Counted from the first letter of the stretch, positions 6,585 through 64,000 are shown. The stretch is 64,000 nt of DNA from Cyanophora paradoxa CCMP329 (GCA_004431415.1 QPMI01000560.1:124001-188000); one strand, 5' to 3'. Translations and numbers: made by a program. Notes: generated by a model not told the origin, from the letters alone.

Positions 6585-7012
6585 ATCTGTCGTGTAAATT
6601 TCTGGACTCTTAGGCTTTGGTGATGGGGGCTCGTTTTCACTGGAGCACATGTGGATGCGGATGGATACTGTGTCGGAGCTAGCGGCTAGTCTTGGAGGCC
6701 ATGGCCAAGCTGGCGGTTCGAATTCATGGGGCACGGGCATCAAGAGATATCGTGCATCGATCTAGCTCATCAGATAGCTAGCTAGCTAGAATCGCGGCGC
6801 TGCCGCATAGAGGCAGATCTAGATCTATCGACGTCTGGCGGCGCGCGGCCCGGCGCTAGTGCGAGCGCTGCAGCTGCACAGCCGGAGGCAAGACCGACGG
6901 CTTGGAGCGTGTATACCGGCCCCGTACTTCCCGACAATGGCGCGCCGCCGCGACGCAGGCAAGCGTACCCCCCTGGACAAAGAGGTTGGGGTCGCAGCAA
7001 AACCCCGCCGAA

Positions 7013-8230
7013 ATGGCGGCCGCGGACGTCAGCAGGGAGCTAGCACGACAAATAGTGAGCGGCGACGCGCCCATGGTGCTGGATATCCACGCGGGCGCTA
7101 TGGACCTGGAGCGGCAGGTGTGCCCGGCGCTTTCGCGTCGGCTCGACGATGTCTTAGCCAGTGTCTTGCGCAGGTTCTCGGGCCCCTGTCAGCTGCGGGG
7201 ATCCAGGTCGGCCGGCATGGCGCCCTCATCGCCGAGGAGCTCTACCAGGTCCGAGCAGCGCATCGGGGCGAGCCCGCAGCCTCTGACAAGACCGATCCGA
7301 GCACAGATTCCGATGATGGAACTTGGGCAGATCCTCGAGGTCACTGTGAACGGGGTGCGACGACTTGCGCCTGGGAGCCTCGCTGTCGCTGGGCTGACGA
7401 GCGGCTCGCTCCGCAGGAGAAGTGCCCGCCGATCGGTATGGTGCTTGGAAATGTCGTTGGGAAACCCGAGGCGCGTCGCCCCGCTGAGTTGCAGCCGCGT
7501 ATCGTGCCTGACGCGCGCGGGCGCGGCGCAGGTGAAGCAAGTGTACAAATCGACCGAGCTGGCGGAGGCAGAAGCGCAGGGCATGTCCGTAGTCAGCGCC
7601 GGGGAGGTCCTGTCAACGATGGAGGTGCCGTGCAAGCACAGCGCGGGCTGTGCCATCGACAATGGCGCTTCGGACGGCGTCTTCGTCGCCAGCATCGAGC
7701 CGAGCTCCACTGCCCTCCCCTCGCAAGGGAGCAGCGAGCTCTCGATGCCCGGGCTGCTCAACACGCTCCCGGAGAGCCCAGCGGCGAGCAGCAGCGAGGC
7801 GAGCGCGAGCGGCGTGGCGAGCGGCAGCCGAGCGCCGAGCGGCAGCGGAGCGGGCAGCGCGGACGGCAGAGGCGCAAGCGGCGGCAGGGGAGGCGAGGCT
7901 AACGCGGCGGACGCGGTGTGGACAACGGTGGGCGGTGGCTCGGACGGGGCATGGACGGAGGCAGGCCCGGCGCCGTCGGAGGCGGAGCGGGGCAGGGCGG
8001 CGCCTCCGCCGGCGTCTGACGAGGCCGGCGAGCTGGTCGCGGAGTGGGGCGACGAGCCGGGCGGGGTGAACCCCGACGGAGACGGGGACGGGGACGGCGC
8101 CCCCGACGGGGGCTACGCCGGCGAGGAGGCCCACGACGCCGAACTCGAGCTCTCCGAGGCCTCCGCCGACGCCGACCTCCCCATGGGGCCCTCCCCCGCC
8201 GCCGCCGCATGGTCCGGCCAGGGACTGTAG
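7013..8230 (+). CDS. Hypothetical protein (multi-exon, acidic low-complexity C-terminus)
   Basis: ATG in AAATGG context and consistent short introns. Reads MAAADVSRELARQIVSGDAPMVLDIHAG... No recognised domain. Confidence 0.55.
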   Translation: MAAADVSRELARQIVSGDAPMVLDIHAGAMDLERQVCPALSRRLDDVLASVLRRFSGPCQLRGSRSAGMAPSSPRSSTRSEQRIGASPQPLTRPIRAQIPMMELGQILEVTVNGVRRLAPGSLAVAGLTSGSLRRRSARRSVWCLEMSLGNPRRVAPLSCSRVSCLTRAGAAQVKQVYKSTELAEAEAQGMSVVSAGEVLSTMEVPCKHSAGCAIDNGASDGVFVASIEPSSTALPSQGSSELSMPGLLNTLPESPAASSSEASASGVASGSRAPSGSGAGSADGRGASGGRGGEANAADAVWTTVGGGSDGAWTEAGPAPSEAERGRAAPPPASDEAGELVAEWGDEPGGVNPDGDGDGDGAPDGGYAGEEAHDAELELSEASADADLPMGPSPAAAAWSGQGL

Positions 8231-8896
8231 CAGCCCGGCCTCCCCCTCCCCCTTCCACGCCCGCTTCTCCGCTCCTCGCGTTCTTCCCCCGTGTAATTAG
8301 ATTACCACTCGTAACGTAGCTTTAGTAGCGCAGGTAGGTTGCAAAACCATGATTTGAACTCTTCAGCTCGGATGAACCGGTCGACTGCACCATGGCCAGG
8401 CCAGGCCAGCTACTAGGCAGCTAGCGCTCTAGCAAGCCCCTGCTGCTGGAGCAGCTGCTGGAGCATTCGAACACGTGCACCAATTACGTAGCGGCGCGCT
8501 CCGGAGCCATATGCGCACGCATGGCCACGGGCCACGGCCACCGGCCGCGGTACCTCGCGCTCCGGATCCGCACGGAGGACAAATCGAATTTATCGCGCGC
8601 CCCGACCCGGCCCTGCATTTCGTAGTACTAGTGCGCGCAGCCGCTGAGCGCGGCCGAGCTGCGCGCCCGCTGCGAGATCAGAATGCGAACGACGCTGAGC
8701 GGAGCGAGCGCGAAGTCGCGCTTAAGACTGCAGCACCCTCCCAGCCGCGCGCGCGCGGCGCCGGCCGGCCGCTGAGCAACTGCCAGGCTGTTACCGGAGA
8801 GCCTGCGGTACCCCTCCCTTGTCGGGGTATGCGTGTGCAGACGCTAGAGAACCTAGAGACGCCAGCGCCGCAGCCGATGCCGCCGGTCCGGAAGCG

Positions 8897-11800
8897 ATGA
8901 GTTCAGCACAGAAGTTGAAAGCGCGGCTGCGCGCGAAGGCAAAGGAGGGAGAAGGAGGTGCGATCGGTCCGGCTCCCAGCACTTTCGTCCTGACCCGCTT
9001 TCAGGGCTCGTCGCGGACAGCGCAAAGAAACAGGCGTCGCGTCTGCAGACGTTCTGGCGCGGGCTCTCAATCGATGAGCGCAAAGTGCGGAATGGTACCA
9101 CTGCGTCGCGACTGCCGGCGCTCACGCGTGCATTCGCAGGCATTCCTCCGTGAGCAGGCAGTCTGGAGCGTAGACGGGATCACACAGCAGATCGCGAATT
9201 TCATCCGCGTGCCGGACGATGCGGCGGCGCTGATCGTCGAGGAGGGCCTTGAAGCGCTCCAGGACAGGCTAGCTGCACCCGGTGCGCAGCCGCATTGTCG
9301 TTTAACACACGCGAATCTTATTCGATCGATCCGGCTCGAAAGGGCTGCCAGACTCATGCCCGACGCACAAGAAGGGTAGAATTCCGCTCCGCCCAGAGCC
9401 ACAGAAAGTTGCCGGCTTGCTTCAGTTCTACATCGGTGCCACCGGTCCTCAGAGCCTCCGCCAATTGGGGCTGATGCATAATTGCTGCAGCTGTGGTTCT
9501 CACCGGTCCAGGCCACGGAAACCAGAAGTCGAATGTGCTGCCGGCTCCGCTTGTCGATGCGGGCGAGTGCGGATACACAATCTCCTTCTCAGAGCTCGGT
9601 GCGGTCTTCTGATCGGAGCGGCCCGCCCGGCTGACCTCGCGAGCACCCGCAGCGCTGTTCCGCTGCAGCGATGTGAGCAACAGCGTTCGCGGTCCTTTCT
9701 TTAGTTTTGGCGGCGATGGTTCGCGGTTCTCATTCGTCGTCTTCGTGTCGCCGGAGCTCACAACGCCACCGCAGAAGAGACGATGCAAGTTGCGTCCAGC
9801 ATCGATGGCTCCCGGCCGATATCAACAGCTGGAAAGGCTCATGCCTCCGTTCGGTCAGCGAACATCCTTCTTTTCGTTCGCACTTTAAATGACCTGTTGC
9901 TTCAGACTCATCATGGCGCCCATGGACGCCTGCGAAACCTGGAGCGACTGCTTCGACATGCCGCCCGGAGGTACGGGTCTTTGCGTGTCTTCTCGCAATC
10001 GCTGCTGAGAGCACGCCAGGGCGCGTTCTCATCCACTGGGATTTCGATGCCGAGGAGGTGTGGGCTGCGCGTCACGGCATCGGCACGGGCAACCGCGGCA
10101 AGTCGAAGGTCGTCTGCGGGCCTGCGGTGCGCGGCGCGGGGCGCGGGAGCGCGTTGCGGGGCCTGATGTCCGGGCCGGCGGCAGTTCTACCTCATGGACC
10201 TCTCGTCGGAGGGCGTCTTCGACTGCCACGGCTTCGTGGACCGCAAGGTGGCCGGCGGGCAGTCTATGACGATCCGCTGCGAAGTCGGCCGCGCCGAGAA
10301 GGACCGCCGCTTCTACCTTGTCGACACCCTCCAGGTCCAGCTCTCCTGGTGCGCCCCGCCCCGCCCCGCCCCGCTCCTCGCATCGCTGACGGGAGGCTGG
10401 CAGGGACATCATCGCGCTGTGCTTCGCGCTGCCGATGATCCACCCCGGGGATCCGGGCCTGCACGCCTGCCAGCACTACAAGGAGGGCGACTCCAAGTCC
10501 ATCTGCTCCCTCTGCCGTCTCGTCCGCCTCAGCCGCGAGGACAAGCCCGGCCTCGGCCTCCCCACAGGGGCCCCGGCGCTTGACGGGCCGGCGGCGGCGG
10601 CCTCGGCGCAGCCGGCGGCGGTGCCGCCGGTGCTGGTGGTGGACGAGGAGGGGCGCATGTTCGCGGCGGAGCAGTGGGCGGAGTTCGGGACGGTGCCGGC
10701 GCTGAGCGAGGAGCAGCAGGTGCTGCTGCCGCACCGGGACCTCTCCAGCATGGCACGCGACCGAGCCATCGAGCTCCTCTCTTCCAAGCACGCCCCGCCC
10801 GCCGCCGCCGCACCGGCGCCCTCCCCGCCCCAGCGGCCCGCCCTTCCCGCCCCGGACCTCGAGATGGGCGGCCAGGCCCCCGAGACCGACGGGCCGACCC
10901 CCAACGCCCTCCCCTCCCCCGGCCCCTCCTCCCCGGCGGCCGCCGGGGACGCCCAGGCGCTGCAGCAGCCGCAGCAGAGCCAGGCGCTGGCGGCGGGGGG
11001 GCAGGGGGCGGGGGAGGGCGAGAAGGACGGGCCGCAGTGCTACGGCGAGGTGCTGCGGGCGTACGCGGACACGAACGCGCTGCTGCGGAAGGACCGGCGC
11101 GTGGCGATGGACGTCGAGGCGCAGCTCCGCGGCATCGAGCGCGGCGCGCCCCGCGGCGCCGAGGCGTCCCCCATCCAGGAGCCCATCAACCTCATCGACC
11201 CCGGCCACATCTTCTCCTACCGTGCGCCCCCCGCCCCGCCCCGCCCCGGGCCGCCGCCGACGGGACGCGCGGGCAGGGTTCACGGGGGACGCGATGACGT
11301 TCTGGGCGGGTGGCTACATGCCGCTGGGGGAGCGCGGCATGCTCTTCTCGTCCGAGTTCCGCCTCCTGACGAGCCTCTTCATGCTGACGCGGATGATGGG
11401 GGAGCGCCCGAGCGGGAACGCGTCGACGGGGATCTGCAAGAAGCGCATCCAGAAGGCCCTCGAGATGTACCAGAAGGTCCTCACCGAGGTCCTCGAGAAG
11501 CTCGAGACGGCCGAGTTCCAGCTCGCCATCCCCACCGGCCCGCCCCGCAAGCGGGCCCTGGAGGAGGGCGAGGGCTTCCCCGGCGCCGCCATCCACGAGC
11601 TGCTGCGGCGGCACATCGCGCTGCAGAGCTCGATCTTCTACGAGCACAACCCGACGCAGATCGCCAACCTGCTGCTCCAGCACCACGGCGAGGGCACCGA
11701 CGTCATCGAGTACCTGCAGAAGTGCCGCCTCTGGATCGACGCGCAGCTGCGCATCCGCGAGGGCGAGCTGCGCGCCCAGGAGCTCCGCCTCAAGCTCCTC

Positions 11801-14800
11801 CACAAGATGCTCGAGGCCGACGAGCGCTCCAAGGTCGAGGGCGCCGTCCTCGGCGTCGTCACGCACGCCTGGTACCAGTACTTCGTCAACGCCCTCAAGC
11901 TCCAGTGGCAGGCCCAGCAGGAGAAGATCGCCTCGGCGCTCCTCGCCGAGCCGGCCCCGGAGGCCCCGCCCCGCGACCGCGACTCGCCCCTCCCAGGCGC
12001 TGCCGTCCAGCCGGCCGCCGCCCCCGGGGCCCCCGGCGCCGCCCTGCCCGCGAACAAGGCGGAGAAGCGACGGCGGAAGAAGGACGAGGCGGCTGCCGCG
12101 GCGGCGGCGGGCGACGAGGCGGGGGAGGGGGACGACCGGGCCGCGAGCGGCAGCGGGGCGAACGAGGAGCTGGAGCGCCGCGTGGCCGAACTCGAGGAGG
12201 CGCTGCGCGGGCAGAAGACGGCGGCGCGCGAGGCGCAGCAGCGGGCGGCGGAGACGGAGGAGCGGGCGGCGCAGGAGCGGGCGCGCGTCGAGGCGCTGCA
12301 GCGGCAGCTGGCGGAGCTGCAGACGCGGGAGCGGCAGGCGAACGAGTCGCTCAAGGCGAGCCGCGAGACGAGCGCCGGCCTGCAGAAGCGCCTCGCCGAG
12401 GAGCGCAAGCGCACCGGCGAGCTCGAGGAGCGCGCCAAGAAGGAGCAGCGCCGGGCCGCGGAGGCCGAGGCGGCCCTCGCGGAGCGCAAGGCCGAGGCGC
12501 AGCGCCTCCGCGCCGAGAACGGCCTCCTGCGCGGCCGCTCCGGCCCGCCGCCGCCCTCTCCACCGCCGACTGGGAGCTCGTGCGCAAGGCGGCGGCCGAG
12601 GGCCGGGGTGCCTGGCGGGGCGGCCGCGGGAGGAGGTTGAGCGCCTCGTGGCGCACCTCGCCCAGGCGGCCGTGGCGGTCCAGTCCCTCGCCGAGGCCAC
12701 CCCGGCCCCTCCACCACCCCCGCCCCCGCCTCGAGCACCCCGCCCCCGCCCCGCCGTCCCGCCTCCTCCTCCTCCTCCTCGGCCTCCGCCCCGGCCCCCG
12801 CGCCGGCCGCAGCCCCGAAGGGGCGCCGGCAGCGCCCTCTCCGCCGCCCGCCTTCTCCTCGTCCCTCTCCTCGGCGGCGGCGCCCTTCATCCCGCCCTCC
12901 CGCGTCTCGGGCCTGCCCGCCCCGCACCCCGCAGGCCCCTCGTCGCCCCCGCATCGTCCCCGCCCGTACCCGCAGCCCCGCCCCCGCAGCGGGCCCCGAC
13001 GGGGGCACCTCCCCGGCGGGCCCCGCTCGAGCGCGCCTGCCGGCGACGCCCGGCCTAGCACCTCCTCCCCCGCCTCGTCCCCCGCCGCCGTCCCCCGTCC
13101 CTCACAACCTCCCCCCTCGCCCCTCTCCGCCCCGGCGCACCCCGGCCAGCCACCGCCTCTGCCCCCGCAACAGCAGCAGCAACAGCAGCAGCAGCAGCAG
13201 GGGGTGATCCCGGGCGGCCCGATGCCGCCGCAGCACGTGTACATTCCGCCGGGCGGGCCGCCGGGCGGGCACTACGGGATGCCCCCACTGGCGACGCCGG
13301 CGCCGGGGCCGCAGTACGCGTACGCCGGCCAGGGTTACGCCCCGCCCTACGTCCAGTACGTGCAGGCGCCGCAGTACTACTACTCGGCAGCGCCGCCCGG
13401 CGGCCCCCCGCCTCGCGGCCCCGCCCCCGGTGGCCACCCGCACGGGGGCGCCCCCGGGTGGACCCCCGGCAGTCCGAACCCGCGGCGAGGCGCCCCCTAC
13501 GGGCAGCAGCCGCAGCAGCAGCAGCAGCAGCAGCCGTTCAACGGCCCCGGCGGCACACCGTACCCGCCCATGCAGCAGCAGCAGCAGGGGGCGGTGCAGT
13601 ACGGGGCGCGGGGCGGGCCGGCCGGGGGCGTGGTGCCGGGGGGGTACGGGCAGCAGGGGGTGCTCTACCAGTACGTGGACGGGACGGGCAACTACTACTA
13701 CGTGTCCCCCGTGCAGGCCCAGGCCGCCTCGATGATCCAGCAGCAGCACGTCCAGGGGCACCACACGGGGCCCCCGCCCCCGCCCCACCCCTCCGGCTTC
13801 CCCCAGCAGCAGCCGCCCCTCGCCCCCGCGCCCCCGCAGCAGCAGCTTCAGCAGCAGCAGCAACAGCAGCCGCAGCAGCAGCCGCCCTCCAAGCCGGGCG
13901 AGCATCAGCAGGCGCCGCAGCCTGCCAAGCAGGCGCAGGAGCCTCCGGCGAAGGCGGAGAAGGCGAACGGGGAGGCGGAGGGGCTGGCGCACGCGCACGC
14001 GGAGGGGCCCAGCGCCCCCGCCGCCTCGGCGTCGGGGCCAGGGGGCGACAAGCAGCCGGAGCGGGGCGCCGCCTCGCCGGCGGGCGCGGCGGAGGGCCAG
14101 GGCGCCCAGCAGCAGCAGGCGGCCTCGGGGCCCTCGTCGCCCTCGGCCCACGCGCACCCGCACCCGCACCCCCAGCGCCCCGCCCCCGCCCAGGCCCGCT
14201 CGCAGCCGGCCGCCTCGCCGCCGCCCCAGGCCGAGGCGAGCTCATCGTCGTCCAAGGCGCCAGCAGCAGCAGCGCCGGAGGCAGGCCCGGCGGCACCGGG
14301 GGCCCCCGGGGCGGAGGCGGCGGCGTCATCCTCGTCCTCGGCGGCTGCGGCGGCGGAGGCGGCGGGCCCGCTGCGGGGGATGGATATCCCGGCGGAGCTC
14401 GTGGAGCGCTTCGAGGAGCTCGCCGCCTCCAACACCAAGCAGGAGCGCGAGACCTGCGCCGTCCTCCTCGGCCGCCAGGTCCGCCCCGCTGCCCCCCTCC
14501 CCGTCTATGCTCTCCGGGGCTCCGCGCACCCCCGCTTTCCGCTCTTTCTCCCCGGACGCCGATATGATGACCCTTTATCTGTCAATCCCCTGATTGACGT
14601 GATGATTCTCCAAAATAGTCCTCTAAGAAGTTCTGAAACAGCGTCCGGGTCCGTGGTTTCTTTTGACGCCGCTATGATGACCCTTTATCTGTCAATCCCC
14701 TGATTGACGTGATGATTCTCCAAAATAGTCCTCTAAGAAGTTCTGATGCTGCGTCTTCAGTCCCTCGATCTGCACTCTTTTTATGTGTCTCTATGGCCGC

Positions 14801-18635: not shown

Positions 18636-18688
18636 CCGCAGCGCCTCGGCAGAGCAGACTGTGTACCCCAACCAGGACGAAGCAAAAA

Positions 18689-19861: not shown

Positions 19862-20228
19862 GAGGCACCCGCCCGACCGCGCCCCGGCACCCCTCCTCCG
19901 TCGCTTTCTCGGGCGCAATGCAAGCACCTCTAGATCTTGAGCAACAGGCACAAAGCGCGGACAGGCCGCGGGGACGGTGTACATACACTGATAGTAATGG
20001 CCCTAGAATGCTGGACTCAAAAAGAGGCTACGACGAAGGCACTACAAAGAACAGGCGACTTGAAAGCGACGGCGAGCTTGCGCTACGATGGCAGAAGGTC
20101 GTATATATCTATATAGCGATGCACGTAATTATAAGCTAGAAACATTACTGAACAGAAGCTTTGCAGCAACAGTAACACGAGCAGGGGCGCTATTGAAAGG
20201 AAAGAAGAGGGGTGGGGCCTCGGGGCCC

Positions 20229-22092: not shown

Positions 22093-22482
22093 CGCTTTGA
22101 GAGCGTTGCGAGCTCCTCAGCCGCGTGGCGAGCTCCAGTAACGCCAGGAGCGGCCAGGCTCGGGCGCCCAGCAGATGAGCTCTTCAGTCCTCCCGGCGGT
22201 TCGCGCAGAAATCTCCCGACTCGTTGAGGTAGCGGTCGTGTGCTACTAGCTGCTGGGACCACTTGGTCGTATCGCGGCCGGGGGGAAACACGCGCTTGTG
22301 GGGCTCCTTAGACGGTGAGCCTGAGTACGCTGTACCCCCACTCCCTCCCTCCCCCGGCCAGCCTCGCTTACCAACGAGCCGGGGCCGCGCGCGCGCGCGC
22401 GCACCCTCGTGATCATGAGTTCGCGACGCGACGTGGACTTTCTTCACGCGCGGACGCGCACGCGTACGGTTCGTGTGCATAT

Positions 22483-22791
22483 TGGGCGGCGCCCGGCCAG
22501 GCCCCCGAGACCGACGCGTACGGGCCGACCCCCAACGTTAACGCCCTCGAGCTCCCCTCCCCCGGCCCCTCCTCCCCGGCGGCCGCCGGGGACGCCCAGG
22601 CGCTAGCGCTGCAGCAGCCGCAGCAGAGCCAGGCGCTGGCGGCGGGGGGGCAGGGGGCGGGGGAGGGCGAGAAGGACGGGCCGCAGTGCTACGGCGAGGT
22701 GCTGCGGGCGTACGCGGACACGAACGCGCTGCTGCGGAAGGACCGGCGCGTGGCGATGGACGTCGAGGCGCAGCTACGCGGCATCGAGCGC
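22483..22791 (+). pseudogene. Duplicated exon fragment of 10865-11142
   Basis: 278-bp parent versus 309-bp copy. They are identical except for one substitution and five small insertions (7+6+6+6+6 bp). Confidence 0.92.
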
Positions 22792-23053
22792 CGGGGGGTG
22801 CGCCGGGGGCGATGGCTGCGGCGCGCGAGGGCGGCGCGTGAGCCGGAGGGGCGCGTGATTTTCCTTTCGCGGCCCCGGTCACCTCGAGGCCCTCCAGGGC
22901 GGCGCGCAGCGACGAGGCCGCCGCCAGCTGCAGCGCCCTGTCGTCGCCGTCAAGCAGGTAGATACGGGTGCATACCCAGGGGATGGCGGGGATGGACGAG
23001 AGCGCACACGCGTACGGGCGATGCCGGCGCAGCAGCAGACTGGCGATGCAGCG

Positions 23054-23187
23054 TACCCCCAACCGCTAGCACCGGTACCCCCATCGTAATCGCAACATAC
23101 CCCCAACCGCTAGCACCGGTACCCCCATCGTAATCGCAACATCGTAATCGCAACATCGTAATCGCAACATCGTAATTTAATCGCAAC
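23054..23187. repeat. 44-bp tandem duplication with nested 14-bp repeats (TCGTAATCGCAACA)
   Basis: 23054-23097 equals 23098-23141. The 14-mer occurs three times in tandem at 23128-23169, followed by a degenerate copy. Confidence 0.9.
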
Positions 23188-23875
23188 TTGGCAACATCGA
23201 TATCGATATCGTAGCTGAAAAATATATAATCGATGGCCAGTCAGCTCACGTAAACGTACGCGTCGGCTTGCCGAGTCGAGCTCATCATGGCATGACTCAT
23301 GAGTCTCACGACCGTTGGACTCCGGGATCCTTTGCGCACGACGCCTGCACCTGCTTCACATTGCATTGCAACTTTCCAATTTGGCAACGGTTGCATTATA
23401 ATTACAAGTCACGATTCACGAGTCACGAGCACTTCCCCAAGTTCCTAAACATGAGCTAGCGCTGCACTGGCGCCGTGCGCACGCAAATACTTACGCGCGC
23501 GCTCGGTCGATATGTATCTACGACGCCCACGTGCACGTGGCGAGGAGCTAGCCGAGTGTCAGCTTGGCGTATCAGCAAGTCTACAGTGAAACGAATACGA
23601 CTGTCGGCTTTAGCACTATTACTACGAATAGAAAAGAGTTACAAGAACGAGATGATGGAAACATGAAAAGCGCATAATGAATCAATCTGCGCGGCCTTGA
23701 TCGCTTGAAACTGCGACATACAAAAACGGGAAGCGACAAGGTCCATAGAAAACTGCCTTCGAATTCTACAAGATGCGCGGCGCTGAACAAACGCGGCGAG
23801 TCTCGGTCGAATCTTGCACATGCATCCTATACAGGAGGAAAGGTCGCGAGCGGCCCGGCGCGCGGGTGCTTGGGG

Positions 23876-26073
<2,198 letters not shown>

Positions 26074-29900: not shown

Positions 29901-30969
29901 CGAGGACCTTGGCTATCCCGAAGTCTCCGATCTTGATCACCCGCGCGTTCTTCGTCAAAAACAGCTGCGCACGCGCCTCAGCGCGCGGTTGGGGGGGGAG
30001 CAGGGCGGCGGGGCGGAGGGCGGCGCGCGTTCTTGGTCTTCAGGTCCCTGTCGAGCGGAGGGGCGGAGGGGATCAGAGCAGGCACTGGGGGGAGGCCTGC
30101 AGCGTCTGCTCCGCCTGCGAGGCGGGCGAACCGGTGCAGGATTTTGCTGCGCGGGAAAGTTCAGAGGGGCGTAGTGTGCTGGGCGAGCGATGGGCGCCGG
30201 CGCACCGCTCATGGATGTACTGGAGCGCCGATAGGATCTGATCAGGCGAGTCAGACTGGCAGCAGGGTGGGCGGAAATCTTTCAGGGCGCGCCTGGACGA
30301 TCCAGTTCAAGATTTCCTGCGGTACGCGCGCTCTCAGCGGCCGCGGGAAAGGAATTCAAAAGACTGAAGAGAAGGAGAAGCGCACGTCCTCGGTGAAGTG
30401 CCGCCCCTCGGCCTTCCGGGCCTTGATGAGCGAGTGCAGGTCGCCTCCCTCGCAGTACTGCATGACCTGCCGCACGCTCGATTCACATACCAACGCGGAC
30501 CTAAGCGCTCGAGAGTGCGTACGATGCACAAGCTTTCTCCTGTCGGCGCGCTTTCCATGAAGGTCTCTTTGTACGAGACGATGTTCTGCAGCGATCTTAA
30601 GATGGAGAGCGGCGCTCGAGGATGAGCACGCGCACCGGGTGACGCAAGGACGCAAGGAGCTCTGACTCGCTGTACGCTTTCTCCTGGTCCTCGGGTTTGA
30701 GTCCGGCTAGCAGGATCTTCTTGATAACCACGAGCTGGCCGTCCTGCAGGCTCCGGGCAAGGAAGGCCCTGCGCAAGGCGTTAGCTGTTGCTTGCGAGGG
30801 CAACCATCGATGCTGGTACCTCCCGAACGCGCCGCCGCCAATGCACTTTTGTATCTAAGCAATGCAGAGGCGTGAGATGCGTAAAAGCGCTGTGCGCTCG
30901 CGTCTGCACCTCGTAGTCTTTCATGGACGCCTCGGCTGGGGCCCCAGCTTGCATGCTAAAGTGCTGCAT
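26980..30969 (-). CDS. NIMA-related (NEK) serine/threonine kinase
   Basis: Contains VVIKKI, YSESELLASLRHP, VMQYCEGGDLHSLI, IKIGDFGIAKVL, GTPYYLSPEVCQNKPYSYKSDVWALGC and MLQRDPEERP. The C-terminal LRSYFERELGRETF helix is typical of NEK1-type kinases. Confidence 0.93.
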
Positions 30970-31303
30970 CTGCTGCAGCGGCTGTACCGACGGCAGCCTG
31001 CGCCGAGCACCACCAGCCCGCGCTGGCTGGGCCTACCTAAATGCGCGGGCGGAGGCTGTCTCAGGTCTAGACTACACGCGCCATAAGAAGATGCTTCTCC
31101 GATCCGGAGCCTATAGCTCCCAACCGGCAGGAAGGTTGCTCTGCGAGGGGTACGCCACTGAAGAGGGCTGCCTCGGACTTCGTCGGCATTCCTGATCTTG
31201 ATCGGAAGCCTCGCACGCAGCACTTTTCGAAGTCGGAGAACCCAGCCTCTAACTTCCAGCGCCTCTCCTTTGCCGGCTAGCGCAAATTTCTTTCGGCGCC
31301 AAC

Positions 31304-33650
31304 ATGTCGTTCTCGGGATTCAGTTCCAGCGACAAACTCTTCAATATCGGCACAGATGAGAAAGTCGGCATGTCGCTAGGTGGGCCTCTCCCCCGCGGAA
31401 ACGCCGGTTTCCTCATGTCTTGAAAGCAAGACGTCGAAGCTGATTTCGCGTCGGAAACGCAGATGATATCATCAAGAAGTCTCGCACCGGTGCTAAGCCT
31501 CAGCGGAAGGCTCCGGCCGCGGCCCAGAAGGGGAAGGCCGTCGCGGGTGGGAGGCAAAACGTGGCGCGGGTTCGCCAGAACGTGCGTCCATGCTTCTTCT
31601 TCGGCAGCACGCACAGCGGAAATGGTTGATTGTGCGATCTGACTTGCCGATACCCGCTTCCAGATGAAGGCCGCGACGCAGACGCGCGTCAATGTCCAGG
31701 CCAAAACTCGCATCCAGGCCGTCTCCAACCGCACGAAGGCCGTTCGCGGAAACCGTGTGGAGAAGATGCGTGGAATCCAGTACACTGCCGAGACCAAGAA
31801 GAAGCAGCAGCAGGTTCGCGTTTTCGTTCGTTCGGATGGCGCTCGTACACGCTCTAATCGTTCTTCTTCTCCGAAGAACGTGAAGGCGGCAACGCGCGGT
31901 CAGCGCAAGACGACTCTTGCCGCTGCTCGGGCCCAGGCGAACGCCGCCCGCATCCAGGCCAACGCTGCTCGTCTCCGCGCCAAGCAGACCGTCAATCGGT
32001 GAGAACAAAGTGTCGTTTGCGAGATGCACAATCTTTTCTTATCAGTATTTCTGTGCAGGGCGCTTGCCCGGGCGACCGGCCGCGTTCCTGTCGGTGTCAC
32101 CACCCGCGCGATGGCCGGCCGTGGCATGCGTTTCGTTGGCGGCAATCTTCGCAGCGCGGTCACCACCCGGCTCTCCGCGCGGAACCGCGGCGCCCAGCCC
32201 GGCGCTATGCAGATCAAGATCGTCAACGACATTGCCAGGTTGGTGACAACTCGCCTTCCGGCATGTCGGGCCCGTTGCGGAGGAAGGAGGGCACGGGCGC
32301 ACGAAACGAGACGGTCGAGGGCTTGAGCGCGGGAACACGTCGCCCGTTATTACGGCTTATTTTCAGCCAAAGCGGCGAAGCCACCGGCAGCCGTCCCTCC
32401 GGCCAACGCGCCGAATCGATTACTTACGCATTTCATGCGTTGAGGGAAGAGGGCCTCTCTCTCTTAATCAAGCCCGCTCATGACGTCCGCTGCCAAGTGC
32501 CGGATTCGTCATTGCGCGGTTGCGGCCCGCATCGGTGCGCCCCTGTCGGCGTTTCTTTGTTCTGTGAATTTTTCTCACTCTTTCTAGCGCAGCTATATTA
32601 TTTTTACAGTGGGGCCCAGGGCCGTCTTTCCCAGCAGCCTGGCAGCGGGAAGCGCATGTCGTGTCCCCCCTCCCATTATCCCCGCCCCCCCTGCGCAGAT
32701 CGAATGCCCAGCAGCGCGTACAGCGCGCCCCCGTTAAGCAGCTCCGCCGCGCCGTGCCTGCCGCGGTCCGTTTCCCCCGCGCCCGTCCTCCCTTCGGTCC
32801 GCCGACGCCGATTCGGCGCAGACGGCCGTCGCTCGCGTGCAGCAGGCCACCCGCGGCCGCCAGACGGCCATCGCTACCCGCCGCGGCATTCAGGTGCCGG
32901 GCCTGTTTATCTCAGTCATCCCGCACCCGTATCTAACGCCTTTCTCAGCCGGTGCAGGCCCCCGCCCGCGTTGCGAGGCAGGCGGCCCGCCAGCGGCTTG
33001 CGGCTGTTCAGCCGGTGAGCATCCGCCAGCGGCTCTCGGTCCCGCAGCAGCGCGTCGTGCGCGGGCGGGCAGCCCCCGGCGCCCACGCGGACGCGTTCGC
33101 CGCCGCCGTCGGCATCGCCCGGGCGCCCCGGCCGGTGGCCTACCAGCCCGTGGCGCGCCGGGCCGCCCCGTCCAGTACGAGGAGTACTATGATGAGCCGG
33201 TCTACGCCGCCGCGCCGCCCCGCCGCGCCGCCCAGGCCTCCGGTGCGCCCCCCAGGCACAGCCGCGCCACCCCGGGCCCGCCTCCTCACGCGCTGCGCAG
33301 GCTACATGACCCGGCAGCAGCCCATGGCCCAGCGCCTCTCCCGCCCCGTGCAGGCGGCCCCGGGTGCGTGCCGTGCTCGCGGCCGCGCCCTCTGCATGCC
33401 CGGCGGCCCCCGCCGACGGGCCGGCGCCGGCGCAGCGTACGACTTCGGCGTGGAGTACGAGGAGCCAGTGTACGCGGCGCCCGTGCGCGGCCGCGGCATG
33501 GCGCGCTACGCGGTGGTGCAGCCGGCGGCCCCCGTGCGGCGGCAGCCGGTGCGGCGCCAGGCGCAGCCCGTCGCCTACTTCGACGACCCCTCCTACGCGG
33601 ACCCGTACCACCCCCACGCGCTCCCCCGCAACGCGTTCGTCCGCCAGTAG
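31304..33650 (+). CDS. UAP56-binding mRNA export adaptor (UIF/FYTTD1-like, Arg-rich, no RRM seen)
   Basis: The spliced N-terminus EKVGMSL|DDIIKKSR is the UAP56-binding motif of ALYREF/UIF. The rest is R/A/Q-rich and disordered. Confidence 0.7.
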
Positions 33651-38495: not shown

Positions 38496-39229
38496 AGGGC
38501 TCGGCGACCGCGGCCCGGACCCCCCGCCCCCTCGAGACCTCTTCTCGTTCCGAGAAGGCTCCGCAGGCCCGGATTCGGGGGTCCACATGTACATGCTTCG
38601 CTCTGGACAGACCCCGCTCGCAATCGGCCGCATCACATTTCAAACACGCAGTGTTTCAAGCTTTTGATGCAAGTCGAGTATATGCCGCTTGCTCAGTATT
38701 TGAGTTCCATGCTACAGTCACACTGAGTGTTCGATTTATGCAGAGCTTTCAACTTGGCAATACCGTAGTAGGCCTAGGCTCTCTATCTGAGACTCTTGCA
38801 ATCATTTGAATTTGAGACTTTGAGACTTGCCGATCGGTTTCCGACTGCCCTCTCCCGGGCTCCCAGGCTCCCGGAGAGTCCCTCTGATGCATTCTTTTGC
38901 CAGCAAGCTAAAGTTGACAAGTCGACGCATACCACTCAGTGTGAATGGCCCAGCAAGCTTTAGTTGACTTAAGCCAGCAACTGGCCGCAGGCTGGCAAGT
39001 TTACAAGTTAAGGCGAGCCTCGCGATCCGAGGGCCAGACTCTGATCATGCCATCCCAATGCCATGAATGTGCACGTGCACGTGCCAAGTTAACGTTCAAC
39101 GAGGCACTGCGGCACTCAGTGACTGCCAGGCCCTGAGGCCCTGAGGCTGCGGCACTCCTCATCATGGCATCATGGCATTACTGAGTCATGATCATGCATA
39201 TGACACGGGCGCCCACGGTTACACGCCGG

Positions 39230-42975: not shown

Positions 42976-43483
42976 GCGCCCCGCCCCGCCCGCCCTCCCG
43001 CCCTCCACACCGGTACCCACCGCAGGGCCTGGTAGCTGCAGGGCCCATCCGGGTCTGCTCTCTCCAGCTCAGTCTTCTTTCAAGTTTGCCTATCTCTAAC
43101 AACGTTGAATACCCCACGTCCGCCGCGATGAAGCGCTGATCTGTTCCTCCGTTCGGGGGCCGCGCTGAGGCGATGCAATAATGCAAGGGCAGCAATCGAG
43201 GTTAACGTTTAATTCTGCACAATAAGTCACAATAATTCATTCGAATACCTCGGTACTGTCGTACTACTTCCCAATTTGGAATCCAAATACTAGATACTAG
43301 GCGAATAAGAGTTTCGACCGGAGGCGACTACGCAAATCGAAGGCAAAAAGCGAAAATCTAAAACGCAGAGCAAGTGCAATTGAAAGTGAAGGGCCCCGCC
43401 CGGAGCGGGGGCGGGGCAGGAGAGATGCAGAGGGGCGGGAGCAGCCGCTCGATCTCTGAGTGTAGAGATGGCTCGATGGCGGG

Positions 43484-46058: not shown

Positions 46059-46156
46059 CGCCCGCCGCCCCAGCAGCAGCACCCGCCCCTCGCTCCCCTA
46101 GGCGCGCACGACGCTTCTCGTGCTTCGAGAATTCATCTTCGCAATACTCGAGCGGT

Positions 46157-52988: not shown

Positions 52989-53534
52989 GCGCCCCCGGGC
53001 CCGGGCCCGACGTCGACCGGCCCTCCATGGCCACCAAGGCCTAGGCCTATCCACGTGCACACCCTTGGCCTCCTTAACGTGTAATGTGTGCCTGCATTCG
53101 TTGTAATTGCATTCGTTGTCCTTGCGAAGTTGCATTAAATATTCGTTCCGGATCCACGCGGAGCATCGAATATAGCTCAAAGGGGGACGCTAGTAAGCCT
53201 TGAAGCCTAGCTTTAGGCGGATACACTGATACAGGCGCCCCTAGGCCCAGGATTGCGATCGAAGGGATTGTCGAAGGGACCATCGGACTCCGGTCCGCCG
53301 GGGCCAGGCCGGGATCCGATGATCACCGCTGAGCCGGCCGTGGCATCCGTGCAGGCCGTTGGACCGTTGCTAACTGGGGCCGGACCAGGGGCTGGCAGTG
53401 GCAAATTAGCCGCGGCCGGGCCGCGAATCATCGGCTCATGTGCATGGGCCAAGCCTAGGATCATGATCATCAAGCCTTGCCAAGTTGAAGACTAGCTCTA
53501 AGTGAGGTAGAATGCAGAGCTGGAAGGAGTGGGT

Positions 53535-56500
53535 CTAGAGGGAGATGAGGGAGGGGCTGGAGCCCCTGGCGGGCCCCCCCCGGCCCAGCGAGAGGCCGTC
53601 CTCGCCCTCGCCCTCGCCCTCCGCCCCCTCCTCCTCGCCCTCCTCGCCGTCCAGGGAGGCGGGGCCGGCGGGGGCGGGGCCGGCGGCCGGGGGCGGGCCG
53701 GGGGCGTCGGGGTCGAGGAGGCCGGAGCCGTGCGCGAGCTGCCGCCGCACGAGGCTCCGGTAGAGGCCCCCGGGCCGCCCCAGCAGCTCCTCGTGCCGCC
53801 CCTGCGCCAAGCGTAAGCTAAGCTTCAGCCACGCCAAGCTAAGCTCAGGAATGCGGGCCTGCTCGACGATGCGGCCGCCGGAGACGACGCAGACGAGGTC
53901 GGCGTCCTTGACGGTGGAGAGGCGGTGGGCGATGACGAGGACGGTGCGCCCCGCCATCAGCCGCTGCAGCGCCTCGTGCACCACGTGCTCGCTCTCCGCG
54001 TCCAGCGCCGACGTCGCCTCGTCGAGGAGGAGGATGCGCGGGTCCATCAGCAGCGCCCGCGCGATGGCGATGCGCTGCTTCTGCCCCCCGGAGAGGCGGA
54101 TGCCGCGCTCGCCGACGAGGGTCCCGTACTGCTCGGGGAAGTGCGTGATGAAGTCGTGCGCGTTCGCCTGCCGCGCCGCCTGCCGCGCCCCTCAGCCTCA
54201 GCCTCAGGAGAGCTCAGAGCTCAGGGCGGGAGGGGGCGCACGCGCTCCACGGCGGCCTGGTCGGCGCGGGCCTCGTCGTGAACGCCGTACCGTATGTTCT
54301 CCTCCACGCTCGCCGCGAACTGCAGAGGAAGGGAGGGAGTGAGGGGCGGAGCCGGGCGGGGCCGGGGCGGGGCGGGGCGGGGCGGACGAGGACGGGCTCC
54401 TGGGAGACGAGGGCGACGTGGCGGTGGAGCCAGCGGGGGTCGAGCTCGCGCAGGTCCACCCCGTCCACCGTGATCCGCCCCGCGCTCGCCTCGTAGAAGC
54501 GCTCCAGCAGGTTCACCACCGTCGTCTGTGCGTCTCGCCCCGTCAGCTCAGCTCCAGCGCCGCGCAGGGAGGAGGCGAGGGCGCCCACCTTGCCGCCCCC
54601 CGAGGGGCCCACCAGGGCGACGACCTGCCGGCGGGTGGGGCCGGTCAGGGGCCGGGGGCGGGAGGGGCAGGCGGGGGCGGGGGCGGGGCCGGGGGCGGGC
54701 CTGGCCGGGGCGGAGGTGGAGGGAGACGCCCGAGAGGACCTCGCGCTCGGGGCGGGCGGGGTACGCGAAGGCCACCCCCTCGAAGCGCACCTCCCCCGCG
54801 CACCCCGCCGGCTGCAGCCCGCCCTCGATGTTCACCGCCGGCTGCGCGCGGGTGAGATGAGATGAGGGACGGGGCGGGGCGGGGCGGGGCGGGGCGGGGC
54901 GGGGCGGGGCGCGGGCCTTGCGCTCGAGGAGCTCGAAGACGCGGGCGCCGGCGCCGGCGGCCTTCGCGAAGTCGGCGTAGATGCGCGAGATGCCCCCGAG
55001 CGCTGGCCCCGGCCCCTCAGAAGAGAAGAGGAGGCTGCGGGGCGGAGCGGGGCGGGGCGGGCGGGCGGGGGCGGGCGGGGCGCGCCGGTGCCGACGAAAA
55101 TCATGTAGAGGACGAAGGAGAGGAGCCGCCTGCGCGCGCGGGCGCGACGGCCGCGGCGAGGGGCGGAGGTCAGCGGCGGGGCCGCGGGCTCTCAGGCTCC
55201 CAAGCGGGCGGGCGGACCCCGGGGAGAGGAGGCCGTCGAGGGCGAGGCGGCCGCCGTAGAAGAGGACGAGCACGACCGCCACCGTCGACACCGCCGACAC
55301 GAAGCCTGAGGAGGGGGCGGGGGCGCTTCGGCGTGAGCGCGCGCGCGCTGGAGACGGAGGGAGGGCGGGCGGGCGAGCGCACAGTCGAAGGCGGCGTAGC
55401 CGACGGCGGTGCGCATTGCCATCCTGCGCGCGCCCCGTGAGCGCGGGCTGGGGCGGGAGAGGAGGAAGGGAAGCGGGCGGGCCTGTAGGCCTCGTCGACG
55501 CGGGCGGAGTAGCGCTCGAGCTCGCGCGCCTCCCGGCTGAACGAGCGCACCTGCGCCCCGCCCCGCCCCGCCCGCCCTCAGCCCCCGCGCAGGGGGGCCT
55601 TGCAGTGAAGGAAAAGGGGCGCGCGGTGCGGATGTTGCTGATGGCCTCCTCCGCGGCCACCGTCGCCAGCGCCAGCGCCTCTTGAACCTCTGCGGTCCCA
55701 GGGGGGGGTGGGGGGGGGCGGGGAGAGGGGCGAGGGGCGAGGGGGGCGAGGGGGCGCGCACGGCGGCCGACGGCCTTCATGAAGCGCCCGAAGCTACGCG
55801 CAGGAGGTCAGTGCTACTCTTAGACTGCATCCGAGCGGGAGAGTCACCTTACGGCGCCGATGGAGACGGCGGGGGTGACCGCCAGCATGAGCTGCGAGGC
55901 CGGGCTCAGCTGGGCGGGGGCCGCGGGCCGAGGGGCGGGTGGGGCACGAGGGTGAGGCGCCAGGAGATGGAGAGGAGGAGGACGAGGCCGGCGGCCGCCT
56001 GCCCCCGCACCCCCTCAGCGCCGCGCGGAGGGCGGGGCCGGGCGCCGGGGGCGGGCCTGGAGGGCGGAGCGGAGGAGCTGCGCGATGTTCTGCGTCACCG
56101 CGCTCTGGATGACCTGCCCGCGGCCCCGGTCAGAGGGGCCACGGGTGCTGGGCGGGGCCCCGGGGCGGGCGGGGCGGCGAGACGGGCCTGGCAGTCGCCG
56201 GAGAGGCGGTTGACGAGCTCGCCTGTGCGCGTCGTGTCGAAGAAGGCGACCTCCTGCGCCACCACCGCCCCGAAGAGCCGCCTGCGCGGCGCAGCTCAGC
56301 CGCCAAGGCTGGGCTTGGAGTGGCCGCGGGGGCGGGCTGGCGCGCTTGCGGAGGCGGGCGACGACGCGCTCCGACGCGAGGGAGAGGAGGTAGGAGCGGA
56401 AGAAGGAGGCCACCCCGCCCGCCAGCGCGATCCCCACCAGCGCCAGCATGGCGGCCCGCAGCTGCGCCAGCCCTGCCCCAAGCCTCGATGAGGGCGCACG

Positions 56501-57353
56501 GGGGCGGGGCGGGGCGGGGCGGGGCGGGCCGGCGTCGCGGGAGGGGCTGCTCCCGATCACGTCGATGATGCGCCCGATGAAGGCCGGCAGCGCCAGCGTC
56601 GAGCCGGCCGCTGCCGCCCGACCTCAGCGGCCGCGGCGGCAGCGGCGGGGGCGGGGGGGCGAGGCGGACAGGCGAGGGCGCAGAGGCAGCCGGCGGCGAT
56701 GACGTGCGCCTCGGGGCGCGCGAGGGCCGCCAGCTGGCCCGGCTTCAGCGGCTCCGCCTCCTTCTTCCCCTTCTCCTCCTCCGCGCCCCCGCCCACGGCC
56801 TCCGCGCGCGCCGCGCCCGGCCCCGTCTCCTCGTCCCCCGCCAGCGCGCTGTAGCCCGCCCCGGGGCGCCCGCCCGCCGCCGCCCGGTCCCCCGGTTCGT
56901 CGCTGCCGCGTGCAGCCTGCCGGCCGGGCCGCGGCCGGCGCCGGGTCGGGTTGGTGGGGCTCGAGACAGGCGAGGGGGGCCGCGGGGAGGGCGCACGCGA
57001 AGGCGACGGCCTGCAGAAGGACGAAGAGGGCACTGTAGGCGACGGCGGCGGCCGCAACGGCGCTGCCGCCGCCCCCCGCCGGCGCCGCGGCCGCCCCCTT
57101 GGCGCACAGGGCCGCACCGAAAACGGCGGCCACGGCGGCGACGTAGAGAATCTGGCGCCGGCTGTAGCGCTCGCGCACGGGCCAGACGGCCGGGAGGAAG
57201 CAGATGGCGCGAAGAAGTGCGAGTGCCAGGAGGTCCGCCGTCGACGACGAGAAGCTGTATACGCTCTGCCCCCCGCCGTCGCCCCTAAGCCCGGAGAACA
57301 AGCGGCGAGCACGGGCGGCGCACCGTATCCTCGTCCGAAGCGACGTAGAGCAT
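53535..57353 (-). CDS. ABCB half-transporter with an extra N-terminal membrane domain (ABCB9/TAPL- or ALS1-like)
   Basis: Walker A GPSGGGK|TT, Q-loop VSQEP, signature LSGGQKQR, Walker [12 protein letters not shown] and H-loop IAHRLST. Also [10 protein letters not shown] and [14 protein letters not shown]. The N-terminus reads [17 protein letters not shown]. Confidence 0.92.
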
Positions 57354-58154
57354 CGTAACGCTGCCGAGCGCGGGTCGAGATGTTAGCGCGCTGGCAAGCG
57401 CTTGCCCGGCGCTAGCGAGCCAATATCTCGGTAAACGCGATCCAACGAACTCCTTCTCGTGCAGCGTACGCATAGCGGTGCGCGTACGCGCCCGGGGATC
57501 GAGCGCGCGCGTCTAAGCGCGATCCGGGCTGCGCGACCTCGTCACGCTCACCCAACATAGTCCACGAATATAAGGGCGCGTAGAAAGCGCTGTCTTCGCG
57601 GCACCGGCTTGCTGGGCTTTTCGATTGCGCCGTCCAGCCTCGCGGACCGTTCCCGCAATCCACGCCCGCCCCCCCGCCCAACTCCCCTCCAGCCCATCGT
57701 GAGGGACGACCAGAGCTCGCTGAATGCGCTGCTCTCGATGCAACGCTTAAACGTGATGCGGGCTTGGAGCCGACAAGCTTGTGATGCTGTATCCCCCCGG
57801 CCTCGGGCAACCGACGCTCCAATTCGCGGCTGCCGGCGGCGGGCACCTGCAGCTGAGGCCTCGCATCGCCTTTTAGGCTACCGCAGTACTGCTTGAGCAT
57901 GGGATCCGGAGGCTCGCCTCAGATGCCGCTCACCGGCCGACAGCCCAAAGCCCCCTGCCCCCTATGCGCGCACGCCCGCCGCATGCGCATCCGCGACATC
58001 CCGTGGCCGTGAAGTTCAAAAGGGACCGAAGTTCTAATGAGACCGGCGGACACGGTCGCGAGGGGGCCAGAAACGCGCCCGAGGGCCGCGCCGGGGCCGC
58101 GCCGGGCGGGCGGGCAGGGCGGGGGCGGGGGGGCGGGGCGGGCGGCGCCGCCGG

Positions 58155-62036: not shown

Positions 62037-62247
62037 GGTGAAGTTGCTGACACCACGGCGACGATCGAGCGATCCGGCTTAGTCGCGGACGCGCATCCGC
62101 TGAACTCGGATAGCGTGCGCTGAACGTGAATCCCGGGTGATCTGGATGCAATCCCAAGCGGCCAGCGATCAGGGCGAACGTAGGATGTCGTACCCGGACC
62201 GCGCCATCCCCCCCTCCAAAACTCGCCCTCAGCCCGAAGGCCCCGCG

Positions 62248-63695
62248 ATGCTGGCGCTCCGCAGCATTGCTCGTGCCGCATCGGCGGCGCGGCTGGCGGC
62301 CCCCGCACACCCGCGCGCCGTAGTTGTCCAGCCGCGGCGCTGGTCGACGGCTCCACCCACGGGAACACCGCCGCCGTCGGGCGAGAGCGGTCCGTCCTCG
62401 TCGTCCGCACGTAAAGACGCCGTTGCGTCGAAGGTCCGGGCGATGTCGCCTGAGGAAGTGCTGGTTCGCCGATTCCGCCACGCCATACACGGTCAGCCCG
62501 TCAGCGCGGGCTCTGAGCGGCGCGCGCAGGTGCTCGACACGTACTCGCCGCGGGAGCTCCTCGAGCGCGGCAAGCGGATCATGGACGAGTTCAAGGCTCG
62601 CGGGGAGAAGCCGCCGCCGCAGGACGTGCTGTTCGAGCGGATGCTGCACGACATCATGCTGGAGCACAGGCGGAACCCCCGCGAGATCAAGTTGCCAAAG
62701 GGCATCCCGATGCCGGGCGAGATGCCGCCGTTGCCGGAGGGCCTGGAGACTCTGACCGCGGACACGCGGTTCGCGAAGGAGGTGGAGACGCGCCTGCAGA
62801 GGGCGCTGGACCTCGAGATGGCCGACATGGCCAAGCGGAAGCAGGCCGGCGGGGCCGTGCCCGCCTCGGGCCCCTCGGCGGGCGGCCCCGCCTCGGGCCC
62901 CTCTGCGGCCCCGCCCTCCGGAGAGGCCGGGGCCCTCGGGGCGGCGCCCCCGCCCGATCGCGAGCTCGACGAGGCTTTCGCGTGCGCCGCGCCGCCGCCC
63001 GCCCCCGCGCCGAGCCCCGCCCTCCGCCCGACCGCCCCCGCGCAGCAAGCAGATGACCAAGCTCCTCGACCAGTACGAGGAGCGCTTCCGGGCGCGTGCC
63101 GCCCCGCCTCGCCGGCCGCTGGCGCGTGCTCGTCTGAAGGGGCGGGGCGCAGAAGGTGAACCCGGAGCGGCCGGGGCTTGACAGGTGGCTCTCCACCCTC
63201 TTCTTCCTCTCCGTCTGCGGCTTCTTCCTCTACGACGGCCCGCCCCGCCGCCCCCGCGCCCGGGGCCCCGCCCCGATGCGGGCGCTGAGGCGGGGCGGGG
63301 CAGGCTTCGAGCGGTGGAGGAAGCACGAGCTGTGGAAGTGGCACGCGAACAACAGGATCAAGGAGCTCTCCGAGTACGCGGCCGGGGGGCAGGCGGCGGT
63401 GCGCGGCCCCTCCGCGTCGCCTTCTCGTCTCTTCCGGCCCCTGAGGCGGCGGGGGCGGGGGCAGAGGGAGGAGTTCCTGGCGGGGGCGCCGGCGCTGGCG
63501 CGGGCGCTGGCGGCCGAGCCCAGCGCGGAGCGCCAGGAGGCCATCCTCCGCGCCGCCATCGACCGCGCCTTCCCGCCCGCCCCCGCCCCCACCCCCATCC
63601 CCTCCCTCGACGCCTCTGCGCCCCCGTCTCCGCCCGCCCCGTCTCCGCCCGCCCCCGCCCCCTCGAGCGCTGCCCCCCCCGCCCGTGCGAGCTGA
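62248..63695 (+). CDS. Hypothetical single-TM protein with a mitochondrial presequence
   Basis: Starts MLALRSIARAASAARLAAP...RRWST and has a TM segment WLSTLFFLSVCGFFLY. Introns are consistent. Confidence 0.6.
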
Positions 63696-64000
63696 TTACG
63701 ACCGCGTCAGAGCCCCGTTGAATCCTAGATTTGAAGCCTGCGATGGGGTAGAGACCATCGGTTGGGAGGGGGGTAGGGGGCAGTTGAACTCGCCGCGAAG
63801 CTGCTCGCTGGACTTGAGTATAATCGAGTACGACGGCCCACACGAAGCACAGCGCACGCGGCCATTTCGAATTCCAGCTCCGCGCTCGAGCTCGCAGGCA
63901 GACTTCGGACTCGGCGCAGCTCGGCCTCTGCAGCAGCATTCGCCGAGTCGTACTTAAGCTGCCGCTTTCCCAGCTAGCTAAACCGCTCCCCGATGGATCT

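Follow-up and report, generated by a model that had tools for sequence, protein, structure and literature searches.

Excision by several cut-and-paste recombination systems, namely hAT, Transib and MULE transposons and the RAG recombinase, involves flank hairpins, which host enzymes open and whose joining leaves footprints (PMC5499845). In rice, 8 of 94 excision footprints were clean and 86 carried deletions or filler, and CACTA elements, whose ends are CACT(A/G) and whose 3-bp target duplication is variable (Table 1 therein), were rarely excised (2/94; PMC4423477). The present analysis concerns short palindromic scars in a 64-kb stretch of nuclear DNA of the alga Cyanophora paradoxa CCMP329 (GCA_004431415.1, QPMI01000560.1:124001-188000; hereafter the window). 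At these scars, any triplet X in non-coding DNA is converted into X-rc(X)-X, where rc(X) is the reverse complement of X, with a gain of 6 bp, or into X-C-rc(X)-G-X, with a gain of 8 bp. The X-rc(X)-X sites are the product of a real, repeatedly acting insertion mutation process. With little more than even confidence, we lean towards reading the scars as footprints left by hairpin-type breaks when a cut-and-paste transposon that duplicates a 3-bp target is excised. Our literature search, which included the genome paper and its supplements, returned no description of this signature; the genome paper makes no mention of palindromes and its supplements hold no list of transposon classes (PMC6704402).

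The window has a G+C content of 73%, and its densely packed genes alternate with short, less G+C-rich spacers; about 9.7 kb lies below a local GC of 0.64. This gene-dense layout agrees with the published description of the genome, with dense genes, a mean spacer of 770 bp and introns of about 86 bp (PMC6704402). Low-GC spacers were defined as DNA with local GC < 0.64 (9.0-10.8 kb), introns and intergenic DNA being pooled; the counts below refer to them, and leave out period-2 microsatellites, unless stated otherwise. Expected values were obtained from dinucleotide shuffles, from Markov models of orders 2-5, and from a triplet shuffle keeping codon periodicity; the order-5 model is overfitted to 9 kb and itself carries hexamer palindromes.

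With microsatellites included, 43 X-rc(X)-X sites were found for triplets, compared with 4.2 expected from dinucleotide shuffles (z ~18). When microsatellites were excluded, 40 of these 9-mers remained against 3.2 and 3.9 expected in dinucleotide shuffles, or 2.4 once a small nucleolar RNA (snoRNA) array was removed as well. Markov models of orders 2-4 gave expectations of 3.0-4.4, and order 5 gave 11.2, with a highest count of 21 in 200 simulations. An initial annotation of the window, made by eye, had listed 18 sites where a few chance hits were expected; all 18, including three iterated forms, were recovered at their coordinates, and the claimed excess outlasted every null, from the 2.4-4.4 sites expected under dinucleotide shuffles and orders 2-4 to the order-5 value. 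Word lengths of k = 2-5 were scanned against dinucleotide shuffles for the specific k = 3 peak that had been proposed as a check, and the only peak was at k = 3 (1.4x at k = 2; 2 vs 0.2 at k = 4; none at k = 5). X can be any triplet, as 21 of the 32 strand-symmetric triplet classes were in use, consistent with an unspecific target. Scars with one mismatch were also in excess (160 vs 86), which suggests more, older, decayed events. Counted over the whole window, X-rc(X)-X 9-mers number 221, a misleading figure because most are GC-only triplets in GC-rich DNA.

One point in favour of invoking no mutational process at all, the sites then reflecting composition, microsatellites or selected palindromic regulatory motifs, is that the 221 hits in the window are mainly GC-only triplets whose number is near chance. 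CACGTG and ACGCGT resemble known factor sites, and 6-bp palindromes as a class were enriched 1.7x. The palindrome excess (251 vs 147) was nevertheless mostly gone once palindromes within X-rc(X)-X were removed (176 vs 138), and because it shrinks in this way, X-rc(X)-X drives most of it and not the reverse; some 75 of the 104 excess palindromes can be ascribed to perfect scars. The third, direct copy of X is a real requirement, since control arrangements with one palindrome and a direct copy were near chance (7 vs 3.8 for X-X-rc(X) and 4 vs 3.8 for X-rc(X)-rc(X)). Given one 6-bp palindrome, the probability of a second one at +3 was 0.130, compared with 0.013-0.055 at other offsets. Microsatellites fail as an explanation because about 33 of the 40 six-bp sites are single triplications, and head-to-tail tandem repetition does not describe the sites either, period-2 runs being excluded and the middle unit being inverted rather than direct. 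The concern that the signature might reduce to palindromes or microsatellites lacking the third copy is thus answered by the controls, the +3 peak and the single triplications. Together with the survival of the enrichment under dinucleotide shuffles and Markov orders 2-5, the use of 21 triplet classes, the clean insertions between paralogues and between tandem units and the nested scars (both presented below), these results make an origin without a mutational process very improbable.

Longer perfect palindromes were also in excess in low-GC parts (17 vs 3.2 for 12-mers), and about one third of them were iterated scars; examples of longer palindromes lie at 5012-5023, 23294-23305, 26222-26233 and 57393-57406. 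Those outside iterated scars, with arms of 5-7 nt and no third copy, may represent a minority repair outcome with long inverted tracts. A tetranucleotide palindromic run, (TAGC)n at 6775-6789 with a 14-bp palindrome, fits neither form of the scar rule.

The second form, X-C-rc(X)-G-X, occurred 14 times against 0.1-0.4 expected from shuffles and Markov models. Among 16 spacing variants X-n1-rc(X)-n2-X, the (0,0) and (1,1) arrangements stood out (40 vs 3.2 and 23 vs 3.1) and the others were not truly enriched; the C..G pair was present in 14 of the 23 (1,1) sites, while one-sided hybrids, with the extra base on a single side, were at chance (6 vs 3.7 and 3 vs 3.8). An apparent signal at spacing (1,3) (15 vs 3.4) was dropped, its source being the five-copy snoRNA array. 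This array (14557-15228) consists of five tandem ~80-nt units with C/D-box snoRNA features (ATGATGA...CTGA...TGATGA...CTGA), occupies a low-GC, intron-like segment between + strand coding blocks, and contains no scars despite its low GC.

The geometry of both forms was rigid. A scan of direct triplet repeats that was blind to inversion peaked only at gaps of 3 and 5 (periods 6 and 8; z 11.8 and 7.9). Inverted tracts were enriched at 3 nt and not at 1, 2 or 4 nt, and the inverted copy adjoined its flank without a loop, the centre being 0 nt, or 1 nt (C/G) in the eight-bp form. As for alternative joints in low-GC spacers, X-rc(X)-rc(X)-X was absent, X-CG-X was not raised and plain X-X was barely raised.

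This rigidity bears directly on polymerase template switching, in which a 3' end at a break or stalled fork would snap back or switch strand, copy 3 nt and return, in the manner of DNA polymerase theta (Pol theta). Templated reverse-complement insertions are a known product of alternative end joining, those made by Pol theta being short, copied from the flank and sometimes inverted, and the route needs no mobile element, which fits the lack of a donor in the window. Pol theta insertions, however, vary widely in length and require a loop, whereas the tract observed here is fixed at 3 nt, with centres of 0 or 1 nt and no length spectrum. A loopless snap-back would be sterically implausible, and template switching leaves unexplained both the two-sided symmetry and the C..G pair found in 14 of the 23 (1,1) sites. 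We therefore regard it as quite improbable, and as a weaker rival than a hairpin-forming nuclease of the host (see below).

Direct evidence of insertion came from a repeat search of the window, which returned two paralogous segments, copy A (10870-11145) and copy B (22490-22790). Across some 280 bp, a single substitution and four indels separate them; all four indels are 6-bp insertions in copy B that convert X into X-rc(X)-X (ACG, AAC, CTC and GCT). Copy A is coding exon sequence, with a GC content at third codon positions (GC3) of 1.00 in the frame of the open reading frame (ORF) 10435-14703, has none of the four scars, and represents the unscarred state. Copy B is a duplicated exon fragment whose frame is open (GC3 0.97), and its four scars translate as insertions of the residue pairs AY, VN, EL and AL. 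Because these scars add residue pairs in an open frame, the process can create in-frame protein insertions too. The summed contig depth of bins 22264-22854 was about 6-12x that of the neighbourhood, which suggests that the copy B region belongs to a multi-copy family.

A 14-bp tandem array provided a second comparison. Three identical units have a single CAA and the last unit has the 8-bp insertion CAA-C-TTG-G-CAA; in the same array, an ATC that is single in the other units became ATC-GAT-ATC-GAT-ATC, a gain of 12 bp. The last unit also has a 5-bp indel at 23169-23181, TAAT to TAATTTAAT, which goes against the rule and is the only non-conforming one among the eight small indels compared. The events are insertions, because deletions could not yield an excess of the long form.

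Scars recur on scars. Iterated scars are common in low-GC spacers, and in-register re-hits affect 7 of the 40 six-bp sites. Collapsing perfect scars laid bare older ones, with three later-round events against 0.02 in shuffles, and the 51 bp at 39104-39154 collapse to one GCA triplet through six 8-bp events (GCA twice, ACT, CTG, and AGG twice). The iterated scars, the later-round events and this block bear out the view, already put forward in the initial annotation, that the process acts repeatedly. Its further suggestion that the process builds palindrome-rich spacers is supported in part: besides their share of the excess palindromes (see above), perfect scars make up 10-18% of the hot spacers and 3.8% of the low-GC spacers taken as a whole.

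Assembly error does not account for the sequence at the scars. Some library types are known to produce palindromic artefacts, and a long-read sequencing or assembly error at palindromes was considered. Contigs derived from short reads of four independent public runs (2012 and 2024) nonetheless reproduced 19900-25800 (5,901 letters), a region that takes in the densest scar cluster, with zero base or indel differences, and we consider the probability of an artefact negligible.

The excess in low-GC spacers amounted to +3.4/kb for the six-bp form and +1.3/kb for the eight-bp form. In GC-rich non-periodic DNA, X-rc(X)-X was likewise in excess (87 vs 39.5), particularly for triplets containing A or T (23 vs 3.2). 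In 3-periodic, coding-like DNA, an apparent excess over the dinucleotide shuffle (48 vs 20.8) was dropped after the triplet shuffle (39 vs 31.3, z 1.4), and the frameshifting 8-bp form was at chance (4 vs 3.7). Scars are thus confined to non-coding DNA. The intergenic signature first noticed is confirmed, while the eight-bp form, the scars in GC-rich non-coding DNA and the lack of any real coding excess had been missed.

Within this non-coding fraction the scars are unevenly distributed among spacers (chi-square 108, 20 degrees of freedom). The strand of each gene was inferred from the order of GC content by codon phase, which was borne out at all five genes for which Pfam or a long ORF gave an anchor. 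Scar density was 15.6 per kb in the five convergent (3'-3') spacers, 1.5 per kb in the six divergent (5'-5') spacers and 2.3 per kb in tandem spacers. The difference between convergent and divergent spacers was about tenfold (low-GC spacers, 19933-62126; exact Mann-Whitney p = 0.004), and the three hottest spacers were all convergent. The initial annotation had proposed that open chromatin at gene ends may be favoured. The distribution observed does not fit a preference for promoters, and reflects either targeting of 3' regions or selection shielding promoters; relaxed selection in 3'-3' DNA explains the convergent excess as well as targeting would.

The direct third copy, the loopless inverted middle and the fixed length of 3 together argue for a 3-bp target duplication and hairpin-capped flanks. 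At excision, a transposase would cap each flank as a hairpin, a reaction known from hAT, Transib, MULE and RAG enzymes, and off-centre opening by host nucleases would leave each end as X followed by its own inverted copy. The two ends could then pair via the 3-nt inverted copy of the duplication and, after fill-in and ligation, give L-X-rc(X)-X-R, L and R being the flanks. If both hairpins were opened at or beyond 3 nt, the inverted copy of the duplication would be the sole microhomology common to the overhangs, and a rigid single product would be expected because annealing there gives X-rc(X)-X whatever the opening point. A first nick placed one base inside an element with 5'-C...G-3' ends would yield L-X-C-rc(X)-G-X-R. 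The missing one-sided hybrids suggest that there are two families of elements, or that a symmetric complex adopts two states. The scar, itself a perfect palindrome, may be a preferred new target, and iterated or nested scars and hot spots would then be explained.

Comparison with described systems shows where this reading fits and where it strains. As in the footprints of hAT elements (Ac/Ds, Tam3, Hermes), Transib and MULEs, and as with P nucleotides in V(D)J joints, an inverted flank copy adjoins the retained target duplication (PMC5499845); both copies of the duplication are kept (40 vs ~3, with palindrome co-occurrence peaking only at offset 3) and the P-nucleotide-like copy has no loop. 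Of the filled, empty and scarred states that excision would leave at one locus, the empty (copy A) and scarred (copy B) ones were observed at the paralogous site, and no filled one. Known hairpin footprints differ from one event to the next and turn up at individual loci, whereas a single product in two forms is found here; the duplication is 3 bp, compared with 5 or 8-9 bp in hairpin-type systems; and, unlike known hairpin footprints, the scars reach 15-23 per kb, are nested, and come without an identified element. The stereotyped scar retaining both duplication copies is also reminiscent of Tc1/mariner elements, whose canonical scar consists of TA, element-end bases and TA, and is stereotyped with both copies kept. 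The middle of a Tc1/mariner scar, however, is made of element-end bases identical at every site, whereas here it is the reverse complement of the local triplet.

Among known superfamilies, CACTA appears to fit best, although flank hairpins made by CACTA transposases are not established in the literature consulted. The likeness to CACTA/En-Spm (CMC) elements lies in k = 3, in an unspecific X and in the C..G of the eight-bp form (PMC4423477): the peak was restricted to k = 3 and spread over 21 of 32 triplet classes, as for a 3-bp unspecific target duplication, and of the CACT(A/G)...(T/C)AGTG element ends the outermost C..G alone can be inferred from the eight-bp form (14/23). The window differs in having neither a CACTA...TAGTG pair nor a transposase.

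Several observations weigh against a transposon. Searches of the 64-kb window seeded with 9-mers and 7-mers found no credible pair of terminal inverted repeats (TIRs) flanked by a 3-bp duplication, the candidate donor TIR matches being rejected as GC-rich or CTG-repeat chance matches only, and no CACTA...TAGTG pair with a duplication was found in the same 64 kb. A Pfam scan of the window's 17 long ORFs detected no transposase domain, and the C..G bases are the only hint of element ends. Plant footprints are heterogeneous (PMC4423477), whereas one outcome dominates here, with a single joint type where deletions, filler and P tracts of varying length would be typical of such footprints. Six cycles of insertion and excision within 51 bp would require extreme local re-targeting. 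Finally, current scar-making activity is not demonstrated, because the four public runs showed no polymorphism or allele series over 5.9 kb (19900-25800).

Some of these points favour a host nuclease acting without a mobile element, for example a domesticated transposase that would make 3-nt staggered breaks with hairpin ends, prefer palindromes and re-cut its own scars. The window holds neither donor element nor transposase, the stereotyped outcome differs from ordinary footprints (PMC4423477), re-hitting is extreme (six events in 51 bp; 7 of 40 six-bp sites hit again in register), and the hot spots lie at convergent gene ends. On the other hand, the third copy would come most simply from an integration step, the C..G of the eight-bp form resembles leftover element ends, and a donor may lie elsewhere in the genome, the published assembly being 29.4% repeats with 11.5% unknown (PMC6704402). 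No nuclease is known that both duplicates 3 bp and caps ends. A hairpin-forming host nuclease is a serious rival, albeit one we judge unlikely. Going further, it is possible, if doubtful, that the scars are no ordinary transposon footprints but were made by an undescribed, self-targeting DNA-writing activity, namely a hairpin-forming enzyme that works without a resident element. Such an activity would be the chief source of this alga's small insertions and would expand single triplets into non-coding DNA, with a preference for the stretches between convergent gene ends. Transposon excision remains the reading towards which we lean. The main scarred and unscarred features are located in Table 1.

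Table 1. Scars, scarred spacers and paralogous copies located in the window (positions counted from its first nucleotide).
Feature	Coordinates	Strand	Description
Scar cluster	6660..6880	.	4 six-bp scars; sites 6717 and 6815 (AGA-TCT-AGA-TCT)
Scar cluster	8380..8800	.	7 six-bp + 2 eight-bp scars; site 8624
Nested ACC-GGT-ACC	8540-8554	.	Broken by CGG-CCG-CGG
Copy A	10870..11145	+	Coding exon sequence, unscarred
TCT-AGA-TCT	19929..19937	.	Single scar
GC-rich stretch	22386..23040	.	8 six-bp scars; holds paralogue copy B
Copy B	22490..22790	+	Duplicated exon fragment, four scars
ACG-CGT-ACG	22514..22522	.	6-bp insertion, B relative to A
AAC-GTT-AAC	22534..22542	.	6-bp insertion, B relative to A
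CTC-GAG-CTC	22546..22554	.	6-bp insertion, B relative to A
GCT-AGC-GCT	22602..22610	.	6-bp insertion, B relative to A
Hot convergent spacer	23041..23832	.	11 six-bp + 3 eight-bp perfect scars, 17.7/kb; sites 23196, 23396, 23455, 23758
CAA-C-TTG-G-CAA	23184..23194	.	8-bp insertion, last 14-bp tandem unit
ATC-GAT-ATC-GAT-ATC	23196..23210	.	Iterated scar, 12 bp added
GAA-TTC-GAA	26661..26669	.	Single scar
Cold divergent (5'-5') low-GC spacer	30253..32668	.	3 scars in 2.1 kb; contrast to hot spacers
Hottest spacer, convergent	38580..39224	.	23/kb; 14 first-round + 2 nested scars; perfect scars 17.7% of length; initially annotated sites 38585, 39069, 39088, 39186, 39194
Nested block	39104..39154	.	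51 bp reducible to a single GCA; six nested/iterated X-C-rc(X)-G-X events
GTT-AAC-GTT	43201..43209	.	Single scar
Hot convergent spacer	53000..53508	.	8 six-bp, 3 eight-bp and 1 nested eight-bp scar; site 53052
Nested scar in 53000..53508	53472-53490	.	AAG scar broken by TTG scar 53477-53487
Window-end spacer	63846..64000	.	TTC-GAA-TTC 63866, CTC-GAG-CTC 63885, TCG-C-CGA-G-TCG 63940

Among the 17 long ORFs of the window, the Pfam scan identified a TPS/TPP fusion, condensin II, a PI4K (PI4K_N) and Mitofilin. Scattered G-rich repeats of the (GGGGC)n type occur at 2309-2400, 17406-17493, 23916-23956, 54336-54930 and 56489-56545; the summed contig depth of bin 23840-24036 was about 60x that of its surroundings, and the G-rich simple repeat is therefore very abundant in the genome. 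Two CTG/CAG-rich arrays with a period of 9 to 12 nt (20751-21144 and 25248-25554), mutually similar (repeat family D1) and located in coding-like DNA, are probably glutamine/leucine-rich low-complexity coding repeats.

For the biology of this alga, most of the small indels seen here, all four between the paralogues among them, obey one exact insertion rule, to which the bulk of the palindrome excess and as much as 18% of some spacers can also be traced. A mere triplet can thus give rise to non-coding DNA and, in the open exon copy, to two-residue insertions; when alignments, divergence estimates or motif searches involve this genome, each scar is best treated as one event. If no transposon is responsible, an undescribed enzyme would be at work; if one is, the scars gauge its past insertions and excisions to the single base, far more fully than resident copies would. 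The scars constitute a readable mutational record, in which events can be tallied, their order read from nesting and their age set against substitutions.

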